Position numbers and translations under genes: made by a program. The notes beneath the pieces are model-generated. The model was not told the DNA's origin, did not search any database, and saw nothing but the letters and a program-made list of their open reading frames with translations. From the NCBI RefSeq assembly GCF_036365525.1, contig NC_090382.1:101800595-101864594 (forward strand): 64,000 bases of DNA, read 5' to 3'. The first letter of the stretch is position 1. The number at the start of each line of letters is the position of its first letter. Of this stretch, positions 990 through 62,403 are shown piece after piece. The stretch is from Heterodontus francisci (lineage: Eukaryota).

Positions 990-1262
990 CCAGATCCACA
1001 TCAACATTTGTGTTTCCACTGAGAACAATGGAGTCATTTTCATGCACTTCCCATGTATATAAATTCTGATTCTCTGCTCCAACTTGTCTGACTATCAGAT
1101 AGACTGTGTTATTCAGATGGATCTCATCAATATTGTTCCTCCTGTTCTGCTGAGATGAGTCTCTTGGTTTCCAGTGAAGACTGACTGTATCTGAGAGTTT
1201 GGAGATGGTACAGCTGAGGGTGATGTCACTGCCCATTACAGGCCTCTTTGAATTTGTCTCAA
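990..1262 (-). CDS. Gene B Ig exon D6 (D2-type, C2-like; F-strand Cys replaced by Trp)
   Basis: Acceptor ...tttttacag, donor G|gtaagt; 273 nt, phase 1-1; VETNSKRPVMGSDITLSC...SLHWK...NLYTWEV...VDVDL; near-identical to 62131-62403. Confidence 0.93.
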
Positions 1263-1516
1263 CTGTAAAAACAGATAAATGAGCTGTAGTATAGTTGTCC
1301 CTCAGCTTTCTGAACAATTGCATTCGAAATTTTCTTCTTCTACAAACAATCAGACAAATGGTAAGCAGCTGTGCTAAGTGCTGACAATCAGCATTTCCTG
1401 GATAATGTGAATGCTTGGCTGCTTCATCTTCTGCAATTACCTGCTGATGCTTGGCAACATCACCCAAAGACATTGGCCTGGATTTTTATTTACTTGACAT
1501 GCCGAAAGCAAGCGGG

Positions 1517-1770
1517 TAAGAAAACCACGGGGAATCCCAAAGAATCGCAGCAAGTGGTTGAGGTCTGAAATGCACTGCCTGAGAGTGTGGTGGAGGCAGG
1601 TTCAATTGAAGCATTCAAAAGGGAATTGGACTGTTGTCTGAAAAGGAAGAATGCGCAGGTGGGGAGAAGGCAGGGGAATTGAACTGAGTGAATTGCTCTT
1701 TCAGATAGCCGGTGCAGACATGATGGGCTGAATGGCCTCCTCGTGCACGGTAACAATTCTGTAATTCCCA
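1517..1770 (+). mobile_element. CR1 LINE 3' end
   Basis: ctgcctgagagtgtggtggaggcaggttcaattgaagcattcaaaaggg...; same subfamily as 4233-4420 and 21490-21822. Confidence 0.8.
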
Positions 1771-2803
1771 TGCACACTGTGTGGCAGAGATGTATGTGAT
1801 GTCACTGATCTGTTCCCTGCCTGGGAGCCAGCCAGGCTGACAATTTGGCTTCCAGTCAGACAGGGAATTGGTTGGTCGAGGCTATAGGGTCAGTTCAGTC
1901 CCTGTCGGGGGATGTCATTTCAGAGTAGGGGAGTGAGGAAAGCTCAATCCTGGTGGGGGCATGGGGTGGAGGAGGGGATTAATCCCAGAGGGAGAAGGGG
2001 GCTCATTTTGAGGGTGATACCGGAGGGACCCGGGCCTCCCGATCTTCAGACCCAGGGAGTGGCGGGGAGAAGGGAATTGGAGACCGGGGATGGGGGGGCG
2101 GGTGTGTACTTGGATGCCAAGAGGAGGGTGATGTTTGGAGGCCCTTGAGGGCTGGGAGTGGGGGTGGGAGGGGGTTTGGGGGTGTTTGGTGATCGGTGGC
2201 CTAATGAGTGCAAACCCGCTTCCTTGGAGTGTGTCACCCGCCACCTTCTGGTTCAAGTAAAGCTGTAAGTGGGCAGGTTGGAGGTGGTCTTCGATCAGTA
2301 GTCTGAATTTTAAGACTTTAATCCCACCTGACCCCAAACTGCCCGTCATTTTTGGTTAAGAGTCCCCAAAAGAAATATTCACAACACGCAGTTCTACCTC
2401 TCCACCTTTTGAGATTCTCCCATTGCCTTGGCACTAACAAGTCGCTTGCCTAATACCTTTGCAAGAGCGAAGCCATCATCTTCAACCCTTGCCACAAACT
2501 CCAAACTGCTATTATCATCTCCATCACCCTCCATGGCCATTGTCTCAGGAACTTTAGGAGGATGGACAAAAATTTGTGAAAAAATGTGAATGCTATTAAT
2601 TAAACTTACTAACCCTTACTGCATGCACTAACTCTAATGCACTGAGGATTTTACTGACCTGGCTGTTTTGAGTGAGATTCATTCTGGGCTGGGTGATAGA
2701 GCTGAAGGATCATGACATGATCCCAACATTCTGTAGGAATATTCATGGAATTACTCACAGAAAATCATATTATTGAACCCTTTCTAGTCCTTGTCCTACT
2801 TAC

Positions 2804-3148
2804 CTTTGATCCCAAATACTTCAAACTGTTTCAGGATTTTCTTACTGGGCTGTGTCTGAGTCCAGGTGAACAATCCCGCAAGTTCAAAGGTGGGGTTTCT
2901 GATTCTCAGGTTAAGGGTACCCCAGTCCTCACATATCCTCTGAGAAATGCCTGGTATATTATTGTACTCATTGCTCCATTGTACAGCCCATCGCTGATCT
3001 TCACTGTGAAAAGTACCCAATTGATATGTAGTTTGTTTCCCTGAGTGTGGTCTCCATTCCAAGACAATGGGACCATTTCCAGGATTGTCTGGTCCTTTCA
3101 ATACAAAGTTCCCTTCCTGATGGAAAAAATAAATATAATTCGGGAATT
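2804..3148 (-). CDS. Gene B Ig exon D5 (D1-type V-like domain lacking the canonical B- and F-strand cysteines)
   Basis: Acceptor ctttattgcag, donor AAAG|gtaagt; 345 nt, phase 1-1, open; EFPNYIYFFHQEGNFVLKGPDNPG...LEWRPHSG...LAGLFTWTQTQPSKKILKQFEVFGIK; clear paralog of 20947-21285. Confidence 0.92.
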
Positions 3149-3251
3149 CTGCAATAAAGGAGAAGATATATTTTAAAATCAGATAGAAATGTCCTCAATT
3201 GGATCTGTGTAATTGTTAATCCTATAAAGAATTTGTTTTCAATAAGTTATT

Positions 3252-3587
3252 GGCCGGAATTTTACATGGATGTCCCGCCCACCAGCTTAAAAGTTGGAGG
3301 CGAGCCGGCCTCGGCCGAGCCAGGAAGCCACGCAGCAATTGTGTGTGAAACAGGCCCTTAACTGGCCTTGCGCGCGACTTCCGCCCCTCTGAGGCAGGAA
3401 GTCCTACTTCCAAGAGCGGTCGGCCAATCAGCTGTCGGCATCCCAGCTGCTGGTAAAATGGCAGCGGGGATGGGTAGCCGAAGGGAACGCCACTCACCGC
3501 TTCCCAACTCAATTTCACGCCCCGCCCCTGCCACCCCCTCCCCCACCATATTCAGACCTCTCCCAGAAGTGGTGTAAAATGCCGGCC
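3252..3587. mobile_element. Non-autonomous DNA transposon (Harbinger-like MITE)
   Basis: TIRs ggccggaattttaca / tgtaaaatgccggcc (1 mismatch), flanked by a 3-bp ATT duplication (3249-3251, 3588-3590). Confidence 0.75.
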
Positions 3588-4232
3588 ATTAGTTATAGTG
3601 CATTTTCAAATTGACACAGCACAGGAACACTCGAGTAAGGAGTTATATAGAAGAAAGTCACTTTCCTATAATATGATAACTTATTATAATGGATTATTGT
3701 TTCTCATATTTTATTGGAATGAAAGGTTTAACTATATATATAATGCTCTTTTAATGAAGAAACTGTTCTAAAACTTGTTACAAAAAGGGGAGTAAAAGGA
3801 TTAAAAGACAATAAGAAATTATGTGAAACTTTGGAGATGTAACTGGACATTCAAAAAAAAATGGCTTGGATGAAGGCTTTTAAAGGAACAAGGAGAAATG
3901 GAAATGTACTGAGACAATTCCAGATGGTGGATGAAAGCTGATGAGCAATGGTTGTCAAGGGGGCCATGGGAAATGGAGAGCTGGGTGTCCTCAACATACA
4001 GAGGGATGATGATCCTGTGCCTACACATGATATCACCAAGTTTGATAAGGAAAAGGAGGAAATTTTATATTTGGAAGCAACCAGCTGCCTTTATCAATCT
4101 GGGTTTTTTTGCACTTCCACATGTATATAGCCTGCTTATGTAACCAAAGCATAGAAAAGTTCCAGACATTCAGATGGATTTTTTCACCCTGCACATGTAG
4201 GGAGCAAATTCTGGACCATTCTGCGGGAGAAC

Positions 4233-4420
4233 ATGGTGGAGGCAGGTTCAATTGAAGCATTCAAAAGGGAATTGGACAGTTATATGAAAAGGAAGAATGT
4301 GCACAGTTATGGGGAGAAGGCAGGGGATGGGACTGAGGGAATTGCTCTTTCAGAGAGACAGTGCAGACATGATGGGCCGAATGGCCTCCTGTGCTGTAAC
4401 AATTCTGTCATCCTTTGATT
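4233..4420 (+). mobile_element. CR1 LINE 3' end
   Basis: VEAGSIEAFKRELD-type ORF2 C-terminus followed by the CR1 tail. Confidence 0.8.
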
Positions 4421-4827
4421 TCATAATATCACCCAGTTACTAAATCAGACTCATGCTGGACCACTGCAAATACTTGCCATCTTAAAACATGCCTTTCCCA
4501 CAGTCTCCTGTGGGGTGTTTGTTAGAAAATGCAAAGTGTTCATAGACTTTTGTCCAAAAATCAAGGCAGCCTCTGCTTCCTGTTCTTCCCTAATCTTGCA
4601 CACTGCTTACTGATCCTAGGAGTAGATGAGGAAGACCTTTGCTGATCTCACACTTTGGCTCCTTCGACAATCTCTAGTTGCAATGCAAGCTATCAGCACT
4701 TCACTGAAAGCTTGCTGGAGCATCAAGGTGGGAGCCTGCTTAGTGCACTGGCAACTGTTCACCCACTTTCCAAATGCACAGAAATAATGTAAATTCAAGC
4801 ACATTGCCAACACAAGATCTCTGTATT

Positions 4828-5053
4828 TAAAGGTCTGCAAAGGAAACCCGACCAAGCTAGAATGCCGGACCCGTAAGTGCGACCCGACCTGAACCCGACA
4901 CATGTCGTCGGGTCGGTTAGCAGGTCTTTACAGGCCTGGTAAAGGCCTGCTACCCGACCCCGATGGGACCAGATGACATGTGTCGGGTTCAGGTTGGGTC
5001 GCGCTTCCCGGTCTGGCATTCGGGCTCGGTCGGGTTTCCTTTGCAGACCTTTA
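4828..5053. repeat. Fold-back (MITE-like) palindrome, about 226 bp
   Basis: taaaggtctgcaaaggaaacccgacc... pairs with ...ggtcgggtttcctttgcagaccttta; complementary along most of its length. Confidence 0.85.
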
Positions 5054-5281
5054 CCAGGAAGGCATTGTCTCTGTTTATCCCAATTCCTGCATACGTCTCT
5101 TTTATGTCTGCTTACAGAAAACAGCACAAATTTGTACCTGAGGGGGTAACTCCCAACCAGTGCTCACTGGCAGAGCAAATTCATCAATTCCAAACTCTGT
5201 GCTTTTTTTTTTTGGACAGTTAAATGGGAAAAAGCTGTTTCCTTTTCCTATCCATCCTGAAATCAATCAGTCCAAATTCAT

Positions 5282-6080
5282 AGAATCAAAGAATTGTTAC
5301 AGCACAGAAGGAGGCCATTCAGCCTGTCATGTCTGTGCCAGCTCTCTGCAAGAGCAACTCAGCTAGTTGCACTTCACCACCCTTTCCCTGTAGCCCTGTG
5401 AATTTTTTCTTTTCAGCTACTTGTCCAATTACCTTCTGAAAGCCATGATCGAATTTGCCTCCACCACACATTCAGTGCATTCCAGATCCTAACCACTCAC
5501 TGTTTAGAAGAGTAAGAGACAACTTGATTGAAACATATAGATGCAAAACTAATTTGTCTTCTTATTTAAGGAAGGTTGTAAATGTGTTGGAAGCGATTCA
5601 AAGAAGGTTTACTGGATTAACACCTAGAATGGGAGGGTTGTCGTTAGAGGAAAGTTTGGACAAGCTAGGCTTGTATCCACTGGAGTTTAGAACAGTAAGA
5701 GATGACTTGATTGAAACATATAAGATCCTGAAGGGGCTTGACAGGGTGGATGTGGGAGAATCAAGAACTAACAGTCACTGTTTAAAAATAAATCACCATT
5801 TAAGACAGAGATGAGGAGAAATCTTTTCTCTGAGGTTTGTGAGTCTTTGGAACTCTCTCCCTCAAAATGCGGTGGAAGCAGAGTCTTTAAATATTTAAGA
5901 CAGAGGTAGATAGATTCTTGATAAGCAAGGGGGTGATAAGCAAGGGGGTGAAAGGTTATTGCATGTAGGCAGGAATGTGGAGTCGAGATTATAATCAGAT
6001 CAGTCATGATCTTGTTGAATGGTGGAGCTGGCTCACGGGGCCGAGTGGCCTACCCCTGATCCTAATTTATATGTATGTAT
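5282..6080. mobile_element. CR1 LINE fragments (short minus-strand tail followed by a plus-strand 3' fragment)
   Basis: LEAIQRRFT...LGLYPLEFR...DLIETYKILKGLDRVDV in ORF 5455-5814. Confidence 0.85.
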
Positions 6081-6522
6081 GTTCATATGTTTGTATACAA
6101 TATTTGCATCTGGGAAATATTTTTTGCTGTGATCATTTTGGCCATTCCGTCTCAACATTTCTGATTTATTCTTGGTCAGAAAACCAAGGGAAGTGACTCA
6201 ATTTTTCTGTCAAAAGTAAATGCTTGGACTGTTTCTGGGATTTTACCAAAAGTGTAGTTGAAACGTATGGACCAGATTTTAATTTATCCAAAACACATCC
6301 ACTTACATGGAGTTAAAATCGTGCCCATACGGACCAGGAAAGTTCTAAGTTCATTCCCAGGCTATGCTGAGTTATCTCAGGGTAAACTTTCTGATGCTCT
6401 ACACCGCTGTAGAGCTTCACACACAGGATACAAAGGAGGGATTAATTCTGGCAACAAGAACAATAAGTAACAAGAATTTTATTTCGAGATTACACGTATA
6501 AAGAGCAAACACAGGTACTTAC

Positions 6523-6792
6523 CACTGCACTCCAGATAGTACGGGACTAAAACCTGGGGTTTGTTTTGATAAAACACAACACATATCCAGTTCCCTTTGC
6601 CTCTGTCAGCTTTCTGAATAATCAGTCTCAGTGATTTCTCTTCCCCATTCTGTCCATTCAATGTTTTTTCTTCAACAGTTTTGCCATCACTGTTAATCCA
6701 AACAAGTCTCATTGATTCAGTGACATCAGAGACAGAGCAGGTCAGGGTAACAGTGTCTCCCTCAGTCACTGCATCAGGTGGTTCAGCTGTGA
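6523..6792 (-). CDS. Gene B Ig exon D4 (C2-like, WxC F strand)
   Basis: Acceptor tcttgtttccag, donor G|gtaagt; 270 nt, phase 1-1; VTAEPPDAVTEGDTVTLTC...LVWINSDG...GNWICVVFY...YYLECS. Confidence 0.93.
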
Positions 6793-6868
6793 CTGGAAAC
6801 AAGAAAATCATTTAGATTTTAAACAAGAACATGATAATTGAAAACAATGGAAACATTCAGTTTCCTAC

Positions 6869-7219
6869 CTTTAACTGTGATTAATTTAATTGTCACATAT
6901 TTATATAATCCCAGAGAACATGTGTAAACTCCTGCATCTTCAAACAGTACAGGGACAATCCTCACACTGAAGTTCACACCATTAAATGTTGCCATTGTGG
7001 GGACCAGTCGACTCCCAAAGTCAGCCCTGTTTATATTGATGAGCTGATATTTCGATGCAGATGCTATTTCTTTTTCCTGATTTTGAAGATGATATGACTT
7101 CCAGCTCCATGCAGCAGAGTTGTGATCATAATAATAATAATAATAATCATAGCAGATCAGGTAGAGTTCACTGTGATCTGTGCCTGACCGATAAACAGTG
7201 TAACTCTTCGGAGATAAAT
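6869..7219 (-). CDS. Gene B Ig exon D3 (V-set; absent from the ORF track)
   Basis: Acceptor ctcagcaacag, donor AAAG|gtagga; 351 nt, phase 1-1, open; YLSPKSYTVYRSGTDHSELYLICYDYYYYYYDHNSAAWSW...FGSRLV...VLFEDAGVYTCSLG...KLITVK with a canonical DxGxYxC. Confidence 0.93.
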
Positions 7220-7499
7220 CTGTTGCTGAGAGACAGAGAACAATATGTTAGAATTTTACTGCGGCTGAAGTACAGAGAAAAATCAAAGTTATTTGCAGCT
7301 ACAATTAAATGAAGCTATTTTGTGTTTAGATCATCATAACTTCATTTTAATCATGTTTTTGTCAAAGCTGTGAGCTGTTTAAACATTGTAACATGGGTGA
7401 ATTCAATACCCATAAGGCAACAGAAAATTCAAAAAAATTATGCTGTTTTGATTTTTGTGCCCTAAACAACACCACGACATCACAGGATCAATATTTTGA

Positions 7500-8052
7500 G
7501 TTTCAGTCAGTATCACCTCAAGCTGCCATTTCTGTCCTTGTCCTGCTGTAGTGTTCCAGTGAAGCTCAATGCAAGATCGAGGAATAGCACCTCATCTTCT
7601 GATTAGGCACTCTACAGCCTTCTAGACCCAAGATTGAGTTCAACAATTTCAGGGCATGACTGTCTTTTTGTTGTTTTTTTTAAATTTTGTTTCATTTTTT
7701 AACAATGTGTCTGTCTTAAACTTGTTTTTCATGTTTTTGCTTTCAGATAGAACTGTTCGTTATTCTGCCATTTACACTCTCTCTGGAATAATGCTTTGTG
7801 TTTTAGTATAACTATTGCACTCCCTTTGCCTTATGTTCTGTGACATCGCTTGTCTTTTAATTTTCCCTGCCCTCCACCCTATCACATGCCTTCCCTTTTG
7901 TTCTTCTTCCCTCTTTCACTTGCTCAAAGCTTGTTACATTTCTGACTTTTGCCGGTTCTAATGAAAGGTCACAGACATGAAACATTAACTCTGTTTCTCT
8001 CTCCACAGATGCTACCTGACCTGCTGAGTATTTCCAGAACTTTCTGCTTATA
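7500..8052 (+). mobile_element. Penelope-like element 3' remnant
   Basis: gaagctcaatgcaagatcgaggaatagcacctcatctt... ending in acagatgctacctgacctgctgagtatttccag; family assignment by recognition only. Confidence 0.55.
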
Positions 8053-9710
8053 TTCCATGACTTCCTGCTACTGGCAGTTGCATGTCGTGTAGAATTTTGT
8101 GATGGGCCATATAAGGTTTCCCTCAGGCATTCCTTTCACTTAAAATTGCACTTTCAAAATCTGAACTATCGAGCCTTTGGCCGTTCATTCGCTAAAACGT
8201 TTCTGCAGCGACTGATTTGCTCAACTGCACCCTCACCTCCACCTTCGTTCCCAATAAAACCATTACTCTCTCTCTCCTTGGCTGTTCCCCTGGTATGGCC
8301 CTCATCTTTGCTCCCTTAAGTCCAAGGGCATAGACTTGAAAGGAAATGGCAGACTAATTTAGCCATTCAAGGCCAGATCTGATTGGACCACATAGAGCAC
8401 CATCAGATCCTGCTTTCATCTGCAAAACTGCTCACTATTTCAGGGGTCATAGTCTAAGGATACGGGGTAAACCTTTCGGACTGAGATGAGGAGAAATTTC
8501 TTCACCCAGAGAGTGGTGAGCCTGTGGAATTCGCTACCACAGAAAGCAGTTGAGGCCAAAACATTGTATGTTTTCAAGAAGGAGTTATATATAGCTCTTG
8601 GATCTACAGGGATCAAAGGGTATTGGGCAAAAGCGGGAACAGGCTACTGAGTTGGATGATCAGCCATGATCATAATGAATGGCGGAGAAGGCTCGAAGGG
8701 CCGAATGGTCTACTCCTGCTCCTATTTTCTATGTTTCTATATTTCTATCCTGGAATGCAAAGACAACAGCTAGGGCTTATTTTCTCTACTGCAAACTATC
8801 GCTCTCTCCCCGCCTCCTTCATTCTCACCTCCAACAATAAGTGCGAGGAGCTTATTAATTCATTTTGTCACAACAATCCTAACCATCCAATCAACTGCTT
8901 CTGCTGCTTCCTACTCTTCCCAAGCCCATCAGGCCAATCTTCCTCCAAAGCTGGTCCCTGTCCTAACTCTGAACTTGCTCCATTTGGTTAGGCATCCACC
9001 GCCAGATCTCATGTCCTGTTCACATCTGCTAAAAGTGCTCACTGCTCCTGGATTATCCTGAAATGCAGAGATAACCACTGGCTTTTTTTCTCTACTGCAA
9101 ACTGTCTTCATAAACCCCTCTCCCCTGTCTCCTCCACTGTCACCTCCAGCAATAAGTGCCAGGAGCCATATAGACTTCTTTGTCACTAAGATAAAGAACA
9201 TCTGATTAGATGCCTGTGCTGCTTCCCTCGCCTCCTCAAGTTGCCCAGGCCTAGGTTCCTCTCAACTCTCAAGCACCCCACCCCCCTCCCCCCCACCATA
9301 GTCTCGAACGAATATTTCTCTAGTTTTGTTTCCTATCTCCCCTCATGCCTTCTCCAAGATCATCTTGTCCATGAGACATATCTCCTGCTCCTTTGACCCT
9401 ATTCTCACCAAATTGCTGGCCAGCCAACATCCTTCCTGCTCCCCATATTATCTATTGTTAACTGTTCCCTTTCTCCTTGAAACCTGCCATCATCAACCCT
9501 CTCCTCAAAAAGCAACCCTTGACCCCGCTATCCTTCAAACGACCATCACATCTCCAACCCGCCTTTCCTCTCCAAAGTCCTTGAACATGTTGTTGCCTCC
9601 CAAATCCATGCCCATCTTTCCAGGAGTTCCATGTTTAAATCCTTCCAATCAGGTTTATGCCCCTGTCATACTACCAAAACTGTTCTTATCAAAGTCACAA
9701 ATGATGTCCT

Positions 9711-16659: not shown

Positions 16660-16720
16660 TATTCTACACTTCACACAAATGCAAATTCTTATCTTCTACT
16701 CCAAAGTGTCACTCTCAGCA
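16660..16720 (-). pseudogene. Relic fragment of a D2/D6-type Ig exon
   Basis: Reverse complement reads HFGVEDKNLHLCEV*NK, aligning with QVGAENQNLYTWEVHEN (D6) and HVVVEDEKSYVCEVQEN (D2); one stop and a 2-nt deletion. Confidence 0.5.
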
Positions 16721-17107: not shown

Positions 17108-17377
17108 ATTCGGTCACAGAAAAATCTGCTTCTCCTGTGAGAATAACGGATCTATTTTCCTGCACTTCACACACATACGACTTCTCATCCTCGACTACAA
17201 CATGTTTGATTATCAGATAGACTGTGTTATTTAGTTGTATCTGGTCAGTTTTCCTCCTGTTCTGCTTAGATGAGTCTCTCTGTTTCCATTGAAGACTGAC
17301 TGTATCTGAGAGTTTGGAGATGGTACAGCTGAGAGTAACATCACTGCCCACCTCAGGCCGCTGTGGACTTGACTCAA
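17108..17377 (-). CDS. Gene B Ig exon D2 (C2-like, both cysteines present)
   Basis: Acceptor ttttccacag, donor T|gtaagt; 270 nt, phase 1-1; VESSPQRPEVGSDVTLSC...SLQWKQ...KSYVCEV...FSVTE. Confidence 0.93.
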
Positions 17378-20946: not shown

Positions 20947-21285
20947 CTTTGATACCAAATATGTCGTACTGCTTCAGGATTTTATAACTCGGCTGTGTTT
21001 GAGTTAAGATGAATGATCCTGCAAGTTTAAATGTAGGTTTAATTGTCAGATTAATGGTACCACGGTCCCGTTTTATTTTATTGTGTAAGAATCTGCTTCT
21101 AAAGTATTCACTCCATTCTGTTTTCCACCAGCCTAATTTCTCTTTGTGAAAAGTACCCAGCTGCTGGATTTCTTGTCCTGAGTGTGGTTTCCATTCCCAG
21201 ACAAAATGTTCATTTCCAGGACTGTCTGGTCCTTTTAAGGAAACGTCATCTCCCTTATCCAAAAAATAAATATGATGTGGGTTTC
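20947..21285 (-). CDS. Gene B Ig exon D1 (V-like, no cysteine)
   Basis: Acceptor ttctttctaacag, donor AAAG|gtaagt; 339 nt, phase 1-1; RNPHHIYFLDKGDDVSLKGP...VWEWKPHSG...LAGSFILTQTQPSYKILKQYDIFGIK. Confidence 0.92.
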
Positions 21286-23235: not shown

Positions 23236-23323
23236 TTTGTGCGAGAACAGTCTGAAGTGGGAATACAAAGAAACTTAACATCAAACCAGCTGGTATTTTG
23301 CTGCAGAAAAATTGTTGACTCAT
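23236..23323 (-). CDS. Gene B signal-peptide exon (coding part; exon starts at about 23345)
   Basis: ATG at 23323 gives MSQQFFCSKIPAGLMLSFFVFPLQTVLAQ with a hydrophobic core and VLA|Q cleavage-like site; phase-1 donor A|gtaagt matches D1; upstream acceptor tttcttacag. Confidence 0.82.
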
Positions 23324-37459: not shown

Positions 37460-37531
37460 TTATTTCTGTTTTACTTGTGCAATTTGTGCATAGATGACAG
37501 ATGAATCATCTTCCTTTGAATGAGCCGGGTT
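37460..37531 (-). CDS. Gene A last coding exon (ITIM VIYAQI)
   Basis: Acceptor tttctctcttgtag, phase 0; NPAHSKEDDSSVIYAQIAQVKQK*; possible poly(A) signal AATAAA (minus strand) at 37188-37193. Confidence 0.85.
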   Translation of the reverse strand, partial: NPAHSKEDDSSVIYAQIAQVKQK

Positions 37532-38456: not shown

Positions 38457-38500
38457 AGTATCTGAAGATTGTTTATTGCGTTGAATACCATGTCTATGCC
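38457..38500 (-). CDS. Gene A cytoplasmic exon 4
   Basis: attattacag / gtaagt boundaries; 44 nt, phase 1-0; GHRHGIQRNKQSSDT; supplies exactly the phase change needed to reach the last exon. Confidence 0.78.
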
Positions 38501-40802: not shown

Positions 40803-40859
40803 CTTGTGCTTTTTCTTGAAAAATGACAGATCCATAATGAATATCTTCCCTTTCTGTGT
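40803..40859 (-). CDS. Gene A cytoplasmic exon 3 (ITIM IHYGSV)
   Basis: ttattctctgcag / G|gtaatg boundaries; 57 nt, phase 1-1; NTEREDIHYGSVIFQEKAQ. Confidence 0.85.
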
Positions 40860-43560: not shown

Positions 43561-43581
43561 GTACTTCTCAAATTAATGCCA

Positions 43582-44029: not shown

Positions 44030-47000
44030 CATACGGTCATAAGAACTCGGAGCAGGAGTAGGCAATTCAGCCCCTCGAGCCTGCTCCGCCATTCAATACG
44101 ATCATGACTGATCCCATCTCGGCCTCAGCAACACTTTCCTGCCTGTTCTCCATAACGCTTCAACCCTTTAGTAATTAAAAATCTGTCTATCTCCTCCTTA
44201 AATTTACTCAATGTCCCGGCATCCACCGCACTCTGGGGTAGTGAATTCCACAGACTCACGACCCTTTTAGAGAAGTATTTTCTCCTCATCTCCATTTTAA
44301 ATCTGCTACTCCTTATCCTAAAACTATGACCTCTCATTCTAGATTGCCCCACAAGAGGAAACATCCTCTCTATATCTACTTTGTCAATCTTCTTAATCCT
44401 CTATCTACCTCAATTAGATCTCCTCTCAGTCTTCTAAACTCTGGAGAGTAAAGGCCTAAACTGCTCAATCTCTCTTCATAAGACAAACCCCTCAACTCTG
44501 GAATCAATCGAGTGAATCTCCTCTGAACTGCCTCCACTGCAACTACATCCCTCCTCAAGTAAGGGGACCAAAACTGTACGCAATACTGCAGGTGCAGTCT
44601 CACTAATGCCTTGTACAGTTGCAGCAACATTTCCCTACTTTTATATACTATTCCTTGAGCAATAAATGCCAAAATTCCATTTGTCTTCCTTATTACCTGC
44701 TGCACCTGCATACTAGCTTTCTGTGATTCATGCACGAGGACACCCAGATCCCTCTGCACTGAAGCATTCTGAAGTTTCTCTCCATTTAGATAATAATTTG
44801 CCTTTCTATTCTTCTCCACAAAGTGGATAACCTCACACTTATCCACGATATACTCCATCTCCATCAAAGAAGCTGACTCACTCCAAGCAGAAGGGCCGCC
44901 TGCGCATCAACACTCGCAGAATTTCTCATCCACAGCTGTTAGATAAGTTTCTAAATTCACTTGAAAAAGCCCTTCAAAACACTCCTACAGGGGATGCAGA
45001 GACCAAGTGGGCCAACATCAGAGACGCCATCTATGACTCAGCAGTGATCACCTATGGCAAACGTGTGAAGCAGAATGCAGTCTGGTTTCAATCTCAGTTT
45101 GAAGAGCTGGAACCCATTATAGCCGCTAAGCGCATTGCACTGCTGAACTACAAGAAAGCCCCCAGCGAGTTAACATCCGTAGAACTTAAAGCAGCCAGAA
45201 GCACTGCACAAAGAACAGCCAGGCGCTGCGCAAATGACTACTGGCAACACCTATGCAGTCATATTCAGCTGGCCTCTGACACCGGAAACATCAGAGGAAT
45301 GTATGATGGCATTAAGAGAGCTTTTGGGCCAACCATCAAGAAGATCACCCCCCTCAAATCTAAATCAGGGGACACAATCACTGATCAATGCAAGCAAATG
45401 GACCGCTGGGTGCAGCACTACCTAGAACTGTACTCCAGGGAAAATGTTGTCACTGAGACCGCCCTCAATGCAGCCCAGTCTCTGCCAGTCATGGATGAGC
45501 TGGACGTACAGCCAACAAAATCGGAACTCAGTGATGCCATTGATTCTCTAGCCAGCGGAAAAGCCCCTGGGAAGGACGGCATTATCCCTGAAATAATCAA
45601 GAGTGCCAAGCCTGCTATACTTTCAGCACTCTATGAACTGCTTTGCCTGTGCTGGGATGAGGGAGCAGTACCACAGGACATGCGCAATGCCAATATCATC
45701 AGCCTCCATAAGAACAAGGGTGACCGCGGTGACTGCAACAACTACCGTGGAATCTCCCTGCTCAGCATAGTGGGGAAAGTCTTCGCTCGAGTCGTTTTAA
45801 AGAGACTCCAGAAGCTGGCTGAGCATGTCTACCCTGAGGCACAGTGTGGATTTCGAGCAGAGAGATCGACCATTGACATGCTGTTCTCCCTTCGCCAGCT
45901 ACAATAGAAATGCAGTGAACAACAGATGCCCTTCTACGTTGCTTTCATTGATCTCCCCCAAAGCCTTTGACCTCATCAGCAGACGTGGTCTCTTCAGACT
46001 ACTATAAAAGATCGGATGTCCACCAAAGCTACTAAGTATCATCACCTCATTCCATGACAATATGAAAGGCACAATTCAGCATAGCGGTGCCTCATCAGAC
46101 CCCTTTCCTATCCTGAGTGGCGTGAAACAGGGCTGTGTTATCAAACCTACACTGTTTTGGATCTTCTTCTCCCTGCTGCTCTCACATGCGTTCAAGTCCT
46201 CAGAAGAAGAAATTTTCCTCCACGCAAGATCAGATGGCAGGTTTTACAAGCTTGCCCATCTAAGAGTGAAGACCAAGTACGGAAAGTCCTCATCAGGGAA
46301 CTCCTCTTTGCTGACGATGATGCTTTAACATCTCACACTGAAGAGTGTCTGCAGAGACTCATCAACAGGATTGTGGCTGCCTGCAACAAATTTGGCCTAA
46401 CCATCAGCCTCAAGAAAACAAACATCATGGGACAGGACGTCAGAAATGCTCCATCCATCAATATTGGTGACCACGCCTTGGAAGTGGTTCAAGAGTTCAC
46501 CTACCTCGGCTCAACTATCACCAGTAACCTGTCTCTCGATGCAGAAATCACCAAGTGCATGGGAAAGGCTTCCACTGCTATGTCCAGACTGGCCAAGAGA
46601 GTGTGGGAAAATGGCGCACTGACACGGAACACAAAAGTCCAAGTGTATCAAGCCTGTGTCCTCAGTACCTTGCTCTACGGCAGCGAGGCCTAGACAACGT
46701 ATGTCAGCCAAGAGCGACGTCTCAATTCATTCCATCTTTGCTGCCTCCGGATAATCCTTGGCATCAGGTGGCAGGACCGTATCTCCAACACAGAAGTCCT
46801 CGAGGCGGCCAACATCCCCAGCATATACACCCTACTGGGCCAGCGGCGCTTGAGATGGCTTGGCCATGTGAGCCGTATGGAAGATGGCAGGATCCCCAAG
46901 GACACATTGTACAGCGTGCTCGTCACTGGTATCAGACCCACTGGCCGTCCATGTCTCCGCTTTAAAGACGTCTGCAAACGCGACATGACGTCCTGTGACA

Positions 47001-48515
47001 TTGATCACAACTCGTGGGAGTCAGTTGCCAGCGATCGCCAGAGCTGGCGGGCAGCCATAAAGGTGGGGCTAAAGTGTGGCAAGTCAAAGAAACATAGCAG
47101 TTAGCAGGAAAAAAAGACAGAAGCGCAAGGGTAGTGCGAACTCTGCAACAGCCCCGACAACCAACTTTATCTTCAGCACCTGTGGAAGAGTCTATCACTC
47201 TCGAATTGCCATTTATAGCCACTCCAGGCGCTGCTTCACAAACCACTGACCACCTCCAGGCGCTTACCCATTGTCTCTTGAGACAAGGAGGCCAAAGAAA
47301 GTAAGAAAGACTCCATCTGCCAAATTTTGGCCCGTTCACCTAACCTACCCATATCCATTTGTAAATTTCTTATTTCTTTACTGCAAATTACTATCCCACC
47401 TATTTTAGTCTCATCTGCAAATTGGGCTATTGTACCTTCTACCCCTGCATCCAAGTCATTAATATATATTGTAAATAATTGGGGCCAAAGGACCGAACCC
47501 TGTGGCACCCCACGAGTTACATCTTGCCAACCAGAAAAAGGAACTATTTATCCTGACTCGCTTTTTTCTGTTGGTTAGCCAATCCTCTATCCATGCTAAT
47601 AAATTGCCCCAACCCCATGTGATCTTACCTTGTGCATTAACCTTTTGTGCGGCACCCTATCAAATGCCTTCTGGAAGTCCAGATATACTACATCTACAGG
47701 ATCCCCATTATCCACTTTGCTTGTTACAGCTTCGAAGAACTCTAGCAAATTAGTCAAACACGATTTACCCTTCATAAAACCATGCTGACACTGATGTATT
47801 GTGTTTTGACTTTCTAAATATCCCGTTATTACTTACTTAATAATGGATCCTAACAATTTCCCAATGACAGATGTTAAACTAACTGGTCTGTAGTTTCCTA
47901 CTTTCTGCCTCCCTCCCTTTTTGAACAAGGGTGTTATATTAGCATTTTTCCAATCCACTGGAACCTTTCCTGCAACCAGGGAATTTTGGAATATTATAAC
48001 CCATGGATCCACTATCTCCGCTGCCACTTCCTTTAAGACCCTAGGATGTAGGCCATCAGGCCCTGGGGATTTGTCTGCCTTCAATCCCAATAGATTGCTC
48101 AGTACTTGTTCCCTCGTGATGATGATTTTTCTAAGTTCCTCTCTTCCTATAATCTCTGCATTTCCTGTTACTATTGGGATGGTACTAGTGTCCTCCACCG
48201 TGAAAACTGAGGCAAAAAACTGATTTAGTGTCTCCGCCATTTCTGTGTTCCCCTCTAGTAACTCCCCAGTCTCATCCTCCAAAGGACCAACATTCACTTT
48301 AGCTACTCTCTTACCTTTTATATACTTATGGAAGCTTTTGCAATCCGTTCTTATATTTTGCACTAGTTTTCTTTCATAATTTACCTTTGCTCTTTTTATT
48401 ACTTTTTTAGTAACCCTTTGTTGATCTTTAAAAGATACCCAATCTTCCAGCCTGCCACTGGCCTTTGCAATATGGTATGCCTTAGTTTTTGTCTTTATGT
48501 TATCCTTAACTTTCT
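44030..48515 (-). mobile_element. CR1 LINE split by an RTE insertion
   Basis: ORFs 47833-48591, 47236-47508, 44376-44867 and 44125-44364 are collinear CR1 ORF2 pieces. Confidence 0.92.
44861..47309 (+). mobile_element. RTE-clade LINE (5' truncated) nested in the CR1
   Basis: NYRGISLLSIVGKVFAR, QCGFRAERSTID, LLFADD, RWLGHV; TSD actccatct at 44852-44860 and 47310-47318. Confidence 0.92.
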
Positions 48516-49863: not shown

Positions 49864-49941
49864 TGTCTTCTTTTGCCTTTTGATTGACTTCAGCATAATC
49901 AGCAAAACTACTTGTCTCAGGCACCAGCGTCTCATTATCTT
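49864..49941 (-). CDS. Gene A cytoplasmic exon 2 (ADYAEV)
   Basis: ttttttccag / A|gtaagt boundaries; 78 nt, phase 1-1; EDNETLVPETSSFADYAEVNQKAKED. Confidence 0.85.
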
Positions 49942-51031: not shown

Positions 51032-51124
51032 CTTGAATTTGCTGGATTTCATTAATATTTGAATAAAGCTGAGGTGCCTCTTCTGTATTTTCCCCTCGTT
51101 GCAGAGGTTTCTGTCTTTGATTCC
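51032..51124 (-). CDS. Gene A cytoplasmic exon 1 (YSNI)
   Basis: AG/GT boundaries (an in-frame alternative AG lies 6 nt upstream); 93 nt, phase 1-1; GNQRQKPLQRGENTEEAPQLYSNINEIQQIQ. Confidence 0.82.
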
Positions 51125-51450
51125 CTGAACCTATTCATACAGAAATCGCCCATTAACATGCGTTCAGCTTTCCTTACAAGGAATGCAGTGTAGAATGATG
51201 CCTGGACTTCAAGGGTTAAATTACAAGGAGTGATCACACAGACTAGGGTTGTATTCCTTGGAATTTAGAAGGTTAAGGGGTGATTTGATAATTTGAGTGT
51301 AGTTTTAAAGATTTTAATGGGAACTGATTGGATAGAGAGAAACTATTCGCTGTGGTTGGGGAGTCTCAGACTCGGGGCATAGCCTAAAATTTAGAGTTTA
51401 AAATTTAGACTAAGCTTTTGGCCGCCAGTCCAAATACCTCCATATAATAT

Positions 51451-52034: not shown

Positions 52035-52142
52035 CTGCAACCTTGCACTTTCTTAGACTCAGTACCAGTGCCAGGATAATGATGAGGAGAAGAGCCAGAC
52101 TTCCAAAAATAACAACATTGGTATGTTTGAAAGTGGAACGAC
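52035..52142 (-). CDS. Gene A transmembrane exon
   Basis: ttattcttctgatag / G|gtaaga boundaries; 108 nt, phase 1-1; SRSTFKHTN-VVIFGSLALLLIIILALVLSL-RKCKVA, an uncharged TM segment with a basic stop-transfer. Confidence 0.92.
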
Positions 52143-52188
52143 CTATCAGAAGAATAAGCACAGATTTCACATTTAGTTAATAGATTAA

Positions 52189-56866: not shown

Positions 56867-57851
56867 TGTGACAGAAACCACACATGCCAAATGGAAACAT
56901 ACTAATTTTGTCATATGGAACACTTTTTCAACTTTTACTGGACACTGAACATAACTTGTTTAAAATAAAACACAGAGCTGAATGGCTGAAAACATGGCTG
57001 CACATTTGCATTCTGAGAGACAATGGGAGTGCTCCCTGATTCAATTAGTCAGATGGGTTTTGTCAATAATGATGATCAACAGGCATTGAGAGCCATTGGT
57101 TATGTAAGAGCCAGCACTCCACAGACAATCACCCTCCACACCCCCACCGAGTGTGTCTAGTAAGCTTTGAAGAATCAACAACCCTCACAGACGATGCCTT
57201 TGCAAACAAAGCTGGTCACATGACTAACTTGCTGGCCAACCTGGCAATTGATTGAATTGTGCCTCACAGAAAAGTTCAGGGAGACTGAAATTATGAAGAC
57301 CAAAGAGAAGCAAAGTCTCTCTCTCTGTCTCTCTCTCCAGCAAAGTTCCAGGGACCCATGGAAGCAACGCAAGCCTCAAGAGAGAAGACCCATGCAGCCT
57401 TCTGATACCAACGAAACAAGTTGACAGTCTGCATTGGGCCCCAATGAGAACTGCAAGACTTAACTGCAATCAAAGACTTAACAGCAAAACTACAACCAAT
57501 AACTGAATTCCATTTACTACTCCAAACCCTTCCCCTTTAATTCTTTCTCCTCCTCTGTATCTATTTGTGTGTGTGTTTATCGCGTTTGCATGCTCGCGTG
57601 GTTGCGTTGCGTATTTTTAGTAATTTTAACGGTGTTGGAGTGTTAAGGTTAATAAACTTACAGCTTTCTTGTTTAAACCTGAGAAAGCCTGTCTGATTGG
57701 TTCCTTTACAATTACAATTAGACAGCACGAGCAAGGACTCACTGAGGTGAAGCTAAAGACACTGTGTTTTTTAAAGTTAAACCCTGTTACAGCCAAAATA
57801 GAAAAGGGGCCAGAGGGGCGCTTGAGACCCCTTCCTCACCTGGTCATAACA
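56867..57851. mobile_element. Solo LTR inserted in a CR1 fragment
   Basis: tgtgac...cataaca termini, TSD GCAG, and CR1 sequence continuous across the insert. Confidence 0.8.
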
Positions 57852-58629
57852 GCAGACACATGTAGTATGAAATTTAATGCAGAGAAATGAGAAGTGATTT
57901 GGTAGGAAGAAGGAGGAGAGGCAATTTCAACAAAATGGAATAATTTTAATGGGGCGCAGGAACAGCAAGGCCTCGGAGTTCACAAACCTAAATCTTTGAA
58001 TGTGACAGAAAAAGTTGATGAGGCTGGGATTAATCAGTGGAAGGGCATAGTACAAAAGCAAGAAAATTTCACTAAAAACTGAGATGTGAAGGAATTTTTT
58101 CTCTCAGAGGGTCGTGAATCTCTGGAATTCTCTGCCTCAGAGAGTTGTGGAGGCTAGGTCACTAAATGTATTTAAGGAGGAGGTAGATAGATTTTTGAAA
58201 TCTCGGGGAGTCGAGGGTTAGGCAGAGCAGGCCAGAAAGAGAGGTTGAGGACTGGGACAGATCAGCCATGATCTTATTGAATGGCGGGGCAGGCTTGAGG
58301 AGCTGAATGGCCTACTCCTGCTCCTACTTCTTATGTCCTTATTTAAGATAATTAGCAAAAGAACCAGAGCAAAGATAAAGCGAATTATTTTATGCAGTGA
58401 GTTATTATAACCTGGAATGCACTGCCTGAAAGGGCGGTGGAAACAGATTCAATCATAACTTTCAAAAGGAAATTGGATAAATATTTGAAGAGTAAATATT
58501 TGCAGGATGATGGAAGACGAGGGAAGTGAAGCTAATTGGACAGTTCTTTTTAAAGAATCGCACAGTCCTAAGTGGCCAAAATTACTTCTTTCTGTGCTGA
58601 AAGATTCTGTGATTTCCAGTTGATTCCAG

Positions 58630-59030
58630 GCTGATGTCATTCCCCAGCCAATTAGTCCCAGTCCATTAATTCCCCAGCAAATTGTTCCCCGAGGAACATT
58701 CTCAGACCCATAATTCCCTGGCCAATCAATCATTTCCCCCCAATCATTCCACACCGAACATTCCACCCAATCATTCCCTGACCAGTCATTTTCTACCCAA
58801 TTGTGATCACTTTCCTGATTGTCTGACAGAAGTCATGTCAGTAAAGCATGAGGAACCATATTCAAATGTGTATAGTCACAGAGTGAAAGGAAGCAAGTTA
58901 TTTCTGCTCCTTTCCTGAGTTGATTTCACATGAATCTAAGCCAGTACGCTAACCATTCAATCAATCATTTCACAACCAATCATTGGCTAATTAACTATTC
59001 TTTCCCCAACCAATCATTCAGCAGCCAATG
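58630..59030. repeat. Degenerate tandem repeat, unit about 15 bp (cattccccagccaat-like)
   Basis: Repeated cattcc...ccaat units at 58635-58800 and 58950-59030. Confidence 0.55.
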
Positions 59031-60187
59031 GTTTCCACTTCCAGGATTTCCTGCCAGAAGTGATATTGGATGAGTATGGGTCATGTCCAAATGACTGGGA
59101 TTGACAGAGTGACATTAAGGGCTGAATTTTCACTTTGGGGGTGGGAAAAAAGATCCAAGCCCATTTCCAGGTCCTGAAGCCATCCCCGGGGGGATTGCTG
59201 AACTTTGACCTGGGCGCCTCCTTCATTGGCATGGAAACAGGTATCCTCTTCAATTAAGGGAAGCAAGCACCCTCTCGAAGCTGCAGGATCAACCAGTGGG
59301 CTTCCAGATTCAGAGCAGCACCTGGCTACAGTAATAGGTGGGTAACTGAGAGGGTGCTTCAACAAGAAGCCACTTTAAAAAGAAATTTAAACCAAAAATA
59401 CAGAAAACAGCCAGGCCACCGCTATCTGGAGGGGAACCCCCCTACAGGCTGGACCTCCACTCAGGCAGACCAGCAGTGCCTATAGGCCTGCCTGCAGTGC
59501 CAGTACACAGCATGAAACTGGATGCCTCCCTCCAAACAGTTAAACTGCACTACCCACACCCCCACCCTACCACCCAACTCCCCCGTTGCATCAGAAACTG
59601 GAAGCTGATTGGAAAATCACAGCTCACCTCCAGTATATACCCTCAACAAGGCTCTTAATGAGCTGAATTGCTTGTCCCCTTCATAGGGGCAGCCTTGCCA
59701 GGGCCCAAACCCGCGTTGACCAAAATGCCGATGCTGGGAATGGGGTCAGGAAACTGGCATGCTGGGAGGCCTCTTAATTATCCAACCCCATTCGCTTACA
59801 TTCTCAAACTCAGTGGAGCATGAAAATTCAACGCCTATGTGTCACATTTTCCACCATTACTCACTAGCACAACACGAGATGCAAGGAAAACTGCAATGTG
59901 ACCAGCATCTAGTCTTATTACAGTGGGCAAGGGGGGAATTTAGCATTTCAAAGATTCCTTACGGGAGTATAATGGACCTAAAAGACTTTTTTTTGCATTT
60001 ATTCATTTTCAATCCTCTCCGTAGCTTCGAGCTGTTTCGTTTGACTTTTTGATGTTTATATATGCAGACCTATCCTGTGAACTCTTAATAATGTGGAGTG
60101 CAACAGAATAAGAAGTTATCATAATTAAAGAGTATTAAGTGACCAGAATTGTCTTTGAAAATGACAAGCAAAATCTGAGAGACTTAC

Positions 60188-60457
60188 TGTTAAACTTCAG
60201 ATAATATGGAATTAAAACCTTGGGTGTGTTTTGATGAAGTAAAACACATGTCCAGTTCTCTCTGTCTCTATCGGTTTTCTGAATAATCAGCTGCAAAACA
60301 TCCTCTTCCTGTTTTTGTTCCTTCAATGTTTTCTCTGCAACAGTTTTGCCATCACTACTGATCCAAACAAGTCTCATTGATTCAGTGACATCAGAGACAG
60401 AGCAGGTCAGGGTAACAGTGTCTCCCTCAGTCACTGCATCAGGTGGTTCAGTTGTGA
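60188..60457 (-). CDS. Gene A Ig exon D8 (D4-type, WxC)
   Basis: 270 nt, phase 1-1, AG/GT boundaries; VTTEPPDAVTEGDTVTLTC...ENWTCVLLH...YYLKFN. Confidence 0.93.
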
Positions 60458-60535
60458 CTGTGGAAACAAGAAAATCATTTAGATTTTAAACAATAACATG
60501 ATCATTTAAAACCATGGGAACATTCTGTCTCCTAC

Positions 60536-60874
60536 CTTTAACTGTGATTAGTTTGATGGTCACAAAATTATATGATCCCAGAGAACATGTGTAAATTCCT
60601 GAATCTTCAAACAATACAGGGACAATCTGCACATTGAAGTTGTTGCCATTAAAGTTTGTCTCGGTGGGCACCAGTCGACTCCCAAAGTAGGTCCTGTTTA
60701 TATTGATAGGCTCAGATCTGTAAGTAGAAGCTATTTCTTCTTTTTGATTCTGAAAATAACGTGATGACCAGGTCCATTTAGTTTCAGTGTAATCAGATTG
60801 AACTTCACAACTTAGGTAGAGTTCACTGTGATCCGTGACTGACCGATAAAGTGTGTATATTATGTTGTGTAACT
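60536..60874 (-). CDS. Gene A Ig exon D7 (D3-type V-set)
   Basis: ctattgcag / G|gtagga boundaries; 339 nt, phase 1-1; ELHNIIYTLYRSVTDHSELYLSCEVQSDYTETKWTW...FEDSGIYTCSLG...KLITVK. Confidence 0.93.
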
Positions 60875-62130
60875 CTGCAATAGACAGACAGGAAACAAGA
60901 TGTTAGATTTTTATAGTTCCTGAGATACAGATGTTGTAAATTTCCACAGGACCAAACAGCGTCCTCCTGGTATGTCAGCTGGGAGTGCAGCATTAGGACA
61001 GGGAAATCGGCTGGGACCTGGATACACTGGCTGCTGGCCCAGGCTGATAGTTCTTTAAATGTCAGGTTGCAAGTCCATCTGCCTTAAATATGGCTCAGTC
61101 AAAGTGATATTTCTCCATGGACAGTAGATTTGTTAAACTGTCTCAGCAATTAATTATCAACAAATGCCTCATTCCCATTGTATTGGTACATCTGGTCCCA
61201 TTGTGAATAGGAGGTCAAATAGAGACAGAATCATTGATGGCCTGAATGGTCTCCTTCTATGCTATTATGACTCGATGACTCTATGACATAGGCAGGTCCA
61301 TCAAAGAGTGCAATGTCAGTCTAGCTTGATAGAGAAAGCAGCAAGGGGAAGCTTTGACTAATTTCTGAACTCCAGCAGGTCGGAGGTTCATTCGGAGTTA
61401 ATTTGTTTAGGTTAATTAGTTGACCCACTGGTTTGGAACAGTGAGGCATGTTCATTATTTTGAACTTATGCACAAAGACAGGTAATACTGATTAAACTAA
61501 GTGAATCCGATCATAACTGTTATTCTGTATGTTCCCTTGCTGTGAAATAAAGCACTTAAACTGACTTTGTCTCACCAAGGATTTTTTAGGCTGTCTTCAA
61601 AAAATACTAAAGATGCATGTGCGATAGACACAAATATCCAGTTTAGATCACAGGGGAATCTTATTCTTACACCCCAGGCTGTGCCATCACATAATCAGTC
61701 ATTGGGCAGTATGAGATTAACCCTGAATGTAAGATGCTCAGACCATTTTAGTGAGTGACCAGCACCACTGTACCCAAGAGAATGTTTCAGGAATGACCCT
61801 AATCTTTTAACATCAGTGTTGGGTGCCTTTAATTTGTTTGTATTTCTCTATTCCAATGTCGACTGGAAAGGCATTTCCTTTATTCAATTGATGGATTTTA
61901 TTCTTTTTGATTCACAAACATGAATTGAAATGAATCCATTGAATTCACCTGGTTGGTTACATCAGTTCTTAATGTCCCCATTTTATATTTACACCCATGT
62001 TCCAGGGTAAAAACAAGGACCACATTCTGCAGTAAATCCCACAGTGGTTTCTGTGCTCACTGTACTTTGTGTGTAACAGTTTTATATTAGTTATTATTTA
62101 ATACCTACTGCAAGGTAGCTCTGGACTTAC

Positions 62131-62403
62131 CCAGATCCACATCAACATTTGTGTTTCCACTGAGAACAATGGAGTCATTTTCATGCACTTCCCATGTATA
62201 TAAATTCTGATTCTCTGCTCCAACTTGTCTGACTATCAGATAGACTGTGTTATTCAGATGGATCTCATCAATATTGTTCCTCCTGTTCTGCTGAGATGAG
62301 TCTCTTGGTTTCCAGTGAAGACTGACTGTATCTGAGAGTCTGGAGATGGTACAGCTGAGGGTGATGTCACTGCCTATTACAGGCCTCTGTGAATCTGTCT
62401 CAA
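62131..62403 (-). CDS. Gene A Ig exon D6 (D2-type, F-strand Cys replaced by Trp)
   Basis: 273 nt, phase 1-1; VETDSQRPVIGSDITLSC...NLYTWEV...VDVDL. Confidence 0.93.

Follow-up and report, generated by a model that had tools for sequence, protein, structure and literature searches.

Tandem horn-shark genes for putative inhibitory receptors with eight immunoglobulin domains, probably related to CD4 and LAG-3

Results

Two tandem genes on the minus strand

The window analysed here is a stretch of 64,000 nucleotides from the horn shark Heterodontus francisci (RefSeq assembly GCF_036365525.1, contig NC_090382.1, positions 101,800,595 to 101,864,594 of the forward strand), and it contains no runs of N. 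Parts of two genes for proteins built of immunoglobulin (Ig) domains lie in it, both on the minus strand: gene A in the right part of the window and gene B in the left part. There is no other gene in the window. Taken together, the evidence makes us fairly confident that these are tandem genes for type I receptors with eight Ig domains, arranged as a doubled V-C2-V-C2 cassette and followed by a tail with ITIMs (immunoreceptor tyrosine-based inhibitory motifs), and that such receptors would be inhibitory and would belong to an old branch related to CD4 and LAG-3. As part of the same explanation, the window would comprise the 3′ two-thirds of gene A and the 5′ three-quarters of gene B, within a tandem cluster on a chromosome of H. 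francisci.

Reading of the DNA around each exon placed all Ig-type open reading frames of interest on the minus strand; the exon borders are AG/GT, and every Ig exon is of phase 1-1 (Table 1). The borders at 6523, 3148, 1262, 990 and 62403 given in a preliminary description of this DNA proved exact, and the phase stated there is borne out; the exon reading also bore out the order it proposed for gene B, in which leader, D1, D2, D3 and D4 are followed directly by a further D1-type and a further D2-type exon (D5 and D6). Gene A continues from its first visible exon, as had been described, with a D3-type and a D4-type exon (D7 and D8), a transmembrane (TM) exon and a tail, which we find to comprise five exons.

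The first visible exon of gene A had been matched to the second D2-type exon of gene B rather than to the first, and alignment of the window with itself by BLAST agrees: positions 504-1346 and 61628-62486, which lie about 61.1 kb apart, align at 88.8% across 868 bp, flanking introns being part of the match, whereas for the first D2-type exon of gene B the match to gene A D6 reaches only 80.9% and does not extend past the exon. In the same comparison D3-D4 of gene B match D7-D8 of gene A at 84.5%, and D5 matches D1 at 72.7%. Within every 61-kb period there are a single leader, eight Ig exons and a single TM segment.

Pfam calls D2, D3, D4, D6, D7 and D8 as Ig or V-set domains. For D1 and D5 we found no Pfam match, no phmmer match in the PDB and no cysteines; they are placed as V-like only by ESM features, which fall in V-set-like clusters, and by the fold model. 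In D6 of both genes (about 1060-1075 and about 62200-62215, minus strand) the F-strand cysteine is replaced by tryptophan, so that D6 lacks the Ig disulfide, and this replacement is near-invariant in 24 aligned eight-Ig proteins of sharks and rays. The in-frame (TAT)6 microsatellite of exon D3 encodes YYYYYY just past the first cysteine of that V domain; paralogues and orthologues have other residues at this site, so that a repeat prone to slippage falls within a variable loop of the receptor domain.

Table 1 Exons of genes A and B within the window
Feature	Position	Strand	Description
Gene A D6	62131..62403	-	C2-type, F-strand Cys replaced by Trp (YTWEV); first gene A exon within the window; phase 1-1; 100% to XP_067900056.1 residues 553-643; 88.8% to gene B D6 with flanking introns
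Gene A D7	60536..60874	-	V-type, Cys pair present; Pfam V-set, E 2.8e-07; 100% to gene A RefSeq protein residues 644-756
Gene A D8	60188..60457	-	C2-type, NWTC; 100% to gene A RefSeq protein residues 758-846; donor at site homologous to D4 donor
Gene A TM exon	52035..52142	-	Uncharged TM, RKCK stop-transfer; 100% to gene A RefSeq protein residues 848-882
Gene A tail exon 1	51032..51130	-	YSNI, YxN site; absent from isoform X3
Gene A tail exon 2	49864..49941	-	DYAEV
Gene A tail exon 3	40803..40859	-	ITIM IHYGSV
Gene A tail exon 4	38457..38500	-	
Gene A last coding exon	37460..37531	-	ITIM VIYAQI and stop codon (37460)
Gene B leader exon	23236..23323	-	Conserved signal peptide; ATG at 23323, phase-1 donor; tblastn 70% to Pristiophorus leader, E 1.3e-05
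Gene B D1	20947..21285	-	V-like, without Cys pair; most variable domain
Gene B D2	17108..17377	-	C2-type, YVCEV
Gene B D3	6869..7225	-	V-type; in-frame (TAT)6 at 7128-7145; joint 6869>6792 in 4/4 runs
Gene B D4	6523..6792	-	C2-type, NWIC; transcript joints at both ends
Gene B D4-D5 intron	3149..6522	-	3374 bp, mostly repeats; spanned with GT..AG ends by contigs of runs X1, X2 and X4
Gene B D5	2804..3148	-	V-like, without Cys pair; D5-type, 89-92% conserved between shark orders
Gene B D6	990..1262	-	C2-type, YTWEV; joint 2804>1262; gene runs on left of the window

One spliced RNA across the D4-D5 junction

The preliminary description had found neither a TM nor a leader exon in the repeat-rich gap between D4 and D5. 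Our searches concur: a hydrophobicity scan of the gap shows no TM-like stretch, and tblastn with nine family proteins finds no leader or TM homologue in it, although the same search recovered the gene B leader and the gene A TM exon elsewhere in the window.

We checked transcripts in four public runs (X1-X4) from two studies, as contigs over positions 950-6949. The contigs cover exons and repeats, and coverage is near zero in non-repeat intron. The joint 6523>3148 (GT..AG, minus strand), for which the earlier description had asked, is present in three runs from the two studies: in X1 at a depth of 604, with zero mismatch over 102 nt of D4, and also in X2 and X4, whose contigs, 471 and 554 nt long, cover 200 nt of D4 and 271-345 nt of D5. 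The joint 2804>1262 occurs in X2 and X3, and 6869>6792 in all four runs. A more divergent contig from a paralogue has the same D4-D5 join, and the junction sequence is conserved across the 24 aligned eight-Ig proteins. Coverage limited to exons, combined with exact splice joints, is the pattern of spliced RNA; D3, D4, D5 and D6 are therefore joined on one mRNA.

Two points weigh against extending this result to a whole eight-domain message: the four runs are labelled only “RNA? (a guess)” and are kept as contigs, which show that joints exist, not abundance or a full-length transcript; and the full-length eight-Ig mRNA rests on Gnomon models, the transcript data covering D3 to D6 of gene B.

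Many members of the family genuinely have four Ig domains, one skate four-Ig model begins with a D5-type domain, and with all exons in phase 1-1 any cassette could stand alone. It might be argued from these facts that the locus holds separate four-Ig genes, one running from the leader to D4 and the next beginning at D5, and that the eight-Ig protein is a read-through artefact of gene modelling. This explanation is, however, largely refuted, and we give it hardly any credence: the exact D4-D5 joints recur in three runs from two studies and in the paralogue; the gap lacks any homologue of a leader or TM exon; each 61-kb period has a single leader and a single TM; and the junction is conserved in the 24 aligned eight-Ig proteins.

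Gene models in RefSeq

Gene B corresponds to the H. francisci RefSeq protein XP_067899204.1 (1033 amino acids; BLAST identity of 100% for D1-D6), and gene A to XP_067900054-60, of which isoform X1, XP_067900054.1, has 998 amino acids (100% for D6-D8, TM and the last two tail exons). The gene A tails in RefSeq pass through the remaining three tail exons at the borders that we found from tblastn and DNA reading. Both models consist of a leader, eight Ig domains, a TM segment and a tail with two ITIMs, and both are named “uncharacterized protein”. Residues 681-1033 of gene B and 1-552 of gene A have no 100% match within the window; D7 to the tail of gene B and the leader to D5 of gene A would be expected beyond its edges, as the preliminary description had predicted. 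Together with the splice joints, the identity of these models to the window exons upholds the earlier proposal that each gene reads leader, V-C2-V-C2 twice, TM and cytoplasmic tail. The same chromosome also carries a third near-identical gene (XP_067900062-66) and several shorter genes of the family.

XP_067899204.1 begins with exons 30914-30792 and 30687-30631 (minus strand), which give an odd N-terminus of 63 amino acids, and skips the leader exon of Table 1. That exon is conserved in paralogues and in other species and splices in phase to D1 (...AQ-R-NPHHIYF, as in paralogues); the 5′ end of the RefSeq model is probably mis-modelled, or else reflects an alternative start. The gene A isoforms differ in their tails: X3 is without the YSNI exon, X2 is without the YAEV exon and X4 has the last ITIM only. 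One isoform is without D1, and another stops before the TM segment and could be secreted.

These six RefSeq isoforms of gene A, some without tail exons, and an exon design in phase 1-1 that permits skipping, are what one would expect if the eight-Ig mRNA were minor and the main products were shorter, with exons or whole cassettes skipped, secreted and ITIM-less forms included. Yet a whole-cassette skip occurs in no listed isoform, all of them retaining D2-D8; the contigs carry the D3>D4>D5>D6 joints, and an alternative joint out of D4 is not listed. We consider such a predominance of short products improbable.

Spread, forms and history of the family

A HMMER search with the D3 exon against 1.84 billion proteins returned only 41 clusters, all from fish and all named “uncharacterized” or similarly; tetrapods, and teleosts other than eels, are not among the hits. 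Models of about 1000 amino acids, their domains ordered a-b-c-d-a-b-c-d, are found in 18 genera of sharks and rays. Chimaera, where family members are distant ones, adds one model of 823 amino acids. The number of domains varies: there are four-Ig forms, a 12-Ig form in Heptranchias (1404 amino acids), a form with at least 15 Ig domains in Scyliorhinus canicula (1710 amino acids) and a 20-Ig form in an eel, and more distant four-Ig members are present in bichir, sturgeon, eels and coelacanth. In the 12-Ig and longer forms, internal units of D4 type and D5 type are repeated. A nurse-shark GenBank entry of cDNA type from the 2013 era, AGQ17915.1 (“obscurin-like protein”, 916 amino acids), is also a family member, and NCBI has automatically named some others CEACAM5-like, VCAM1-like or CD276 homolog.

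In a tree of a-type domains, those in fifth position in all sharks and rays fall into a single clade (clade value 95) and the first-position domains into another; the D4-type domains likewise form a clade (97) separate from the D8-type. The trees therefore place the doubling of the cassette before the shark-ray split and mark D5-D8 as distinct, conserved domain types, the Cys-to-Trp change in D6 being one example. The chimaera domains group by species, which leaves the doubling undated beyond elasmobranchs. Variability is highest in D1 (65% between genes A and B; family mean, 49%) and lowest in D6 (96% and 74%), and the variability of D1 would be compatible with ligand contact at this domain.

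Transmembrane segments and tails

The gene A tail contains four tyrosines (YSNI, YAEV, YGSV and YAQI) and a single cysteine, in RKCK. Two of the tyrosines lie in canonical ITIMs, IHYGSV and VIYAQI, both shared by the gene B model; the other two provide one YxN site and one further tyrosine. Tails of this kind are about 120-150 amino acids long and encoded by five small exons. Type I topology, an uncharged TM segment and a tail with one or more (S/I/V/L)xYxx(I/V/L) motifs, the features by which an ITIM receptor is recognised, are all present in the protein.

Across the family, 59 models combine an uncharged TM segment with an ITIM, versus about 30 with lysine or arginine within the TM segment. 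Most of the latter, some 25 shark and ray models including H. francisci XP_067899148.1, share a conserved TM motif, GYL(L/F)VKL, and have tails of 8-45 amino acids. The coexistence of ITIM forms and lysine-TM, short-tail forms is a signature that suggests paired inhibitory and activating receptors, in which the lysine-TM forms would be the activating partners.

Resemblance of the four-domain unit to CD4 and LAG-3

A β-strand that runs from the V domain into the following C2 domain is rare, and typical of CD4 and LAG-3 (Takizawa et al., PMC10768021). AlphaFold predicts such strands in a four-Ig member of the family at both V-C2 joints (residues 132-147 and 336-350; predicted local distance difference test score (pLDDT) 80, predicted template modelling score 0.72), and in the eight-Ig protein of gene A at all four (131-145, 336-351, 541-555 and 745-760; pLDDT 71). 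The ectodomain is thus predicted to consist of four rigid V-C2 pairs, in each of which a strand continues from V into C2, joined by three loops.

Searched with Foldseek against the PDB, the four-Ig model has LAG-3 and CD4 at ranks 1-7. VIA-align superposes the four-domain CD4 ectodomain with Z of 15.5-17.7 over 313-327 residues, and fits two-domain fragments of CD4 (D1D2 and D3D4) on D3-D4 at 2.6-3.7 Å over 170-176 residues (rat CD4 D3D4: root-mean-square deviation of 2.6 over 170/177 residues), compared to 4.9-9 Å for nectin, CD166 and CAR; antigen-binding fragments of antibodies also fit much more loosely. The models therefore predict that the four-domain unit resembles CD4 and LAG-3 above any other solved structure.

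The sequences point in the same direction, less strongly. By itself, the D4 exon gives an end-to-end alignment with D2 of LAG-3 at an expect value (E) of 0.003. A family profile built from 29 aligned four-Ig members and searched against the PDB finds LAG-3 at 4.7e-13, in two collinear stretches that each comprise the end of a V domain and the whole of the next C2 domain with WxC aligned, and CD4 at 4.7e-10; the best single stretch scores 26.6 bits with LAG-3 versus 17.1 with CEA. As for the WxC motif itself, the preliminary description had given it as a mark of the C2 domains of CD4 and LAG-3 and had noted NWIC in D4 and NWTC in D8 here. These two are present and align with WGC and WQC of LAG-3, and in D4 of the 29 four-Ig members, bony fish included, W414 is near-invariant and C416 invariant; the motif is thus confined to one C2 domain per cassette.

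Several observations weigh against kinship with CD4 and LAG-3. D2 and D6 lack WxC (YVC and YTW), with Y211 and C213 conserved family-wide. D1 alone is closest to V domains of SLAM/CD2 type (NTB-A, Z 13.3; CD48). The family profile finds CEA at 1.5e-13, slightly above LAG-3, through the summing of six weak domain hits, and CEACAM1 at 5e-08. In the phmmer search with D3, neither CD4 nor LAG-3 was among the hits, and the tail contains neither a Cx(C/H) nor an (F/Y)xxL(D/E) motif. Foldseek with the eight-Ig model lists long multi-Ig proteins first (contactin, DSCAM, titin), with CD4 and LAG-3 only at ranks 29-36; since this fall shows that Foldseek ranking depends on the number of domains, we take the eight-Ig list to be uninformative on kinship.

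On these grounds one may suppose that the resemblance is generic or convergent, and that the eight-Ig ITIM family belongs with, or arose from, a V-C2 family of the CEACAM, SLAM/CD2 or nectin-like kind. CEA as the top profile match in the PDB, the automatic names given by NCBI, the lack of WxC in D2 and D6, a D1 that lacks a disulfide like the CEACAM N domain and the SLAM/CD2 V domain and finds its best single-domain fold matches in NTB-A and CD48, and an ITIM-type tail as in CEACAM1 would all be accommodated by it. By contrast, the best single profile stretch is that of LAG-3 and is collinear over the V-C2 joint in both LAG-3 halves; all seven top Foldseek ranks belong to LAG-3 or CD4; the rigid pair is fitted by CD4 two-domain fragments only; the tryptophan and cysteine of WxC in D4 are kept throughout the family; and the repeat unit has a canonical V domain, unlike the A/B repeats of CEACAM. 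We judge such an origin possible but doubtful.

The likeness to CD4 and LAG-3 claimed in the preliminary description therefore stands for structure (Foldseek, VIA-align), and with weaker sequence support for the profile; it does not extend to the tail, which has ITIMs in place of the CD4 and LAG-3 motifs. Our reading is that the family is related to CD4 and LAG-3, or at the least resembles them in structure, without being a strict member of their group. It probably forms an old branch of its own, related to CD4/LAG-3 but distinct from CD4 and LAG-3 themselves.

Discussion

Our results suggest that the horn-shark genes encode an inhibitory type I receptor composed of a signal peptide, two V-C2-V-C2 cassettes, a single uncharged TM helix and an ITIM tail. 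In the mechanism that we propose, the membrane-distal D1 would bind ligand, Src-family kinases would phosphorylate the ITIMs, and the phosphorylated ITIMs would recruit phosphatases of SHP-1/2 type and so damp the cell. The lysine-TM relatives might signal via an adaptor with an acidic TM segment, of DAP12 or FcR-gamma type, and in that case the whole would constitute a paired-receptor family. Function, ligand and signalling are here read from motifs only.

The family shares with CD4 and LAG-3 the V-C2-V-C2 order in phase-1 exons, here with the unit doubled (as seen by Pfam, BLAST and AlphaFold), a WxC motif in strand F of the C2 domain that lies nearest the membrane in each cassette, the predicted continuous strand from V into C2, and the best matches both of whole-ectodomain structure and of single profile stretches; LAG-3 is, moreover, also inhibitory. 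It departs from them in having eight domains (12, 15 or more, and 20 in relatives) instead of four, in lacking WxC in D2 and D6 and the disulfide in D1 and D5, not D3, and in forming a multigene family with lysine-TM partners. Its tail carries two classical ITIMs instead of Cx(C/H), the LCK motif of CD4, or (F/Y)xxL(D/E) of LAG-3, as these motifs are defined in PMC10768021. Sharks possess separate CD4 and LAG-3 genes (PMC10768021).

With CEACAM1 and CEA the family has in common a V-like N-terminal domain that lacks a disulfide, the serial duplication of domain pairs, the ITIM tail (in CEACAM1) and the top summed profile score in the PDB. CEACAM repeats, however, are C2-C2 (A/B) after the N domain, whereas the repeat unit here includes V-set domains of canonical type (D3 and D7); the individual CEA stretches reach no more than 2-17 bits, and structural searches favour CD4 and LAG-3. 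In the SLAM/CD2 family, the NTB-A and CD48 V domains nearest in fold to D1 also have no disulfide, and Ly9 is a doubled V-C2; but in the C2 domains here there is a single disulfide instead of two (D2 has two cysteines, D6 one), the tail is without the TxYxx(V/I) switch motif, and D3 and D7 are canonical V domains. G6F and DICP were not among our hits, and no comparison aimed at them was made.

In organization, the closest parallels are KIR, LILR/PIR, CHIR, the teleost LITR, NITR and NILT families and skate MDIR: like these, the shark genes form a tandem multigene cluster in which ITIM members stand beside short-tail members with a basic TM segment, the membrane-distal domain evolves fast and the number of domains varies. 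Those families are built from other domain types and have no such four-domain cassette, and none of them was matched among the 41 HMMER clusters. MDIR is CD300/pIgR-like; no database hit carried its name, and no direct comparison with MDIR sequences was made.

A bolder form of the relationship is conceivable, and we hold it only tentatively: the family may be a third lineage of the CD4/LAG-3 superfamily that was present in the ancestor of jawed vertebrates and has been kept in cartilaginous fish, bichirs, sturgeons, eels and the coelacanth, its cassette multiplied as a whole to give 8, 12 and 20 domains and, in one form, 15 or more (probably 16), with a split into ITIM and lysine-TM forms that would supply sharks with germline-encoded paired receptors. 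If this were true, the shark system might read MHC (major histocompatibility complex) class II-like or other polymorphic ligands, in a role like that of KIR and LILR in mammals.

To our knowledge, CD4 and LAG-3 have been treated as a family of two members, with a V-C2-V-C2 unit that has no known relatives. A large and old family with a four-domain unit of this shape would supply a real outgroup for the origin of MHC class II co-receptors; the only outgroup proposed so far, a lamprey “CD4-like” molecule, is disputed (PMC10768021). For cartilaginous fish, the family would also be a further candidate system of paired inhibitory and activating receptors. We know of few such families described in these animals. 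Changing length in whole cassettes, from 4 to 20 domains, would be an unusual way to alter the reach of a receptor, and dozens of RefSeq entries named “uncharacterized protein” could now be named and grouped.

The preliminary description knew of no receptor with this architecture. Our literature searches (shark CD4/LAG-3, nurse-shark “obscurin-like”, MDIR, shark paired ITIM families, and eight-Ig or LAG-3-like receptors) yielded no account of the family or its likeness to CD4 and LAG-3, and Takizawa et al. 2023 (PMC10768021) do not mention the family. The architecture is nevertheless not new to databases, being present in RefSeq for 18 elasmobranch genera and in the one GenBank cDNA-type entry, AGQ17915.1.

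Minor observations

Two short matches to the receptor exons were rejected. A D2-like stretch of 14 amino acids at 16667-16708 (minus strand; VEDK..LC.EV, resembling the D2 F strand), 400 bp downstream of exon D2, has stops on both sides and E of 0.35, and is due to chance or is the remnant of a dead D2-type exon; a plus-strand “NWIC” match at 3161-3259 (E of 0.2-0.9) lies on the wrong strand and was taken as chance.

Interspersed repeats (190-464, 1546-1767, 4234-4408, 5280-5933, 8460-8734 and others) occur in many copies across the window, are covered at very high depth by the transcript-like runs, and fill most introns, including that between D4 and D5. A transposon-derived open frame with likeness to reverse transcriptase lies at 46528-47101 on the plus strand. 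Another transposon-derived open frame, at 48160-48252 on the minus strand, is matched at 61% by the N-terminus of the S. canicula model of 1710 amino acids, and the 5′ end of that model is therefore probably transposon sequence.

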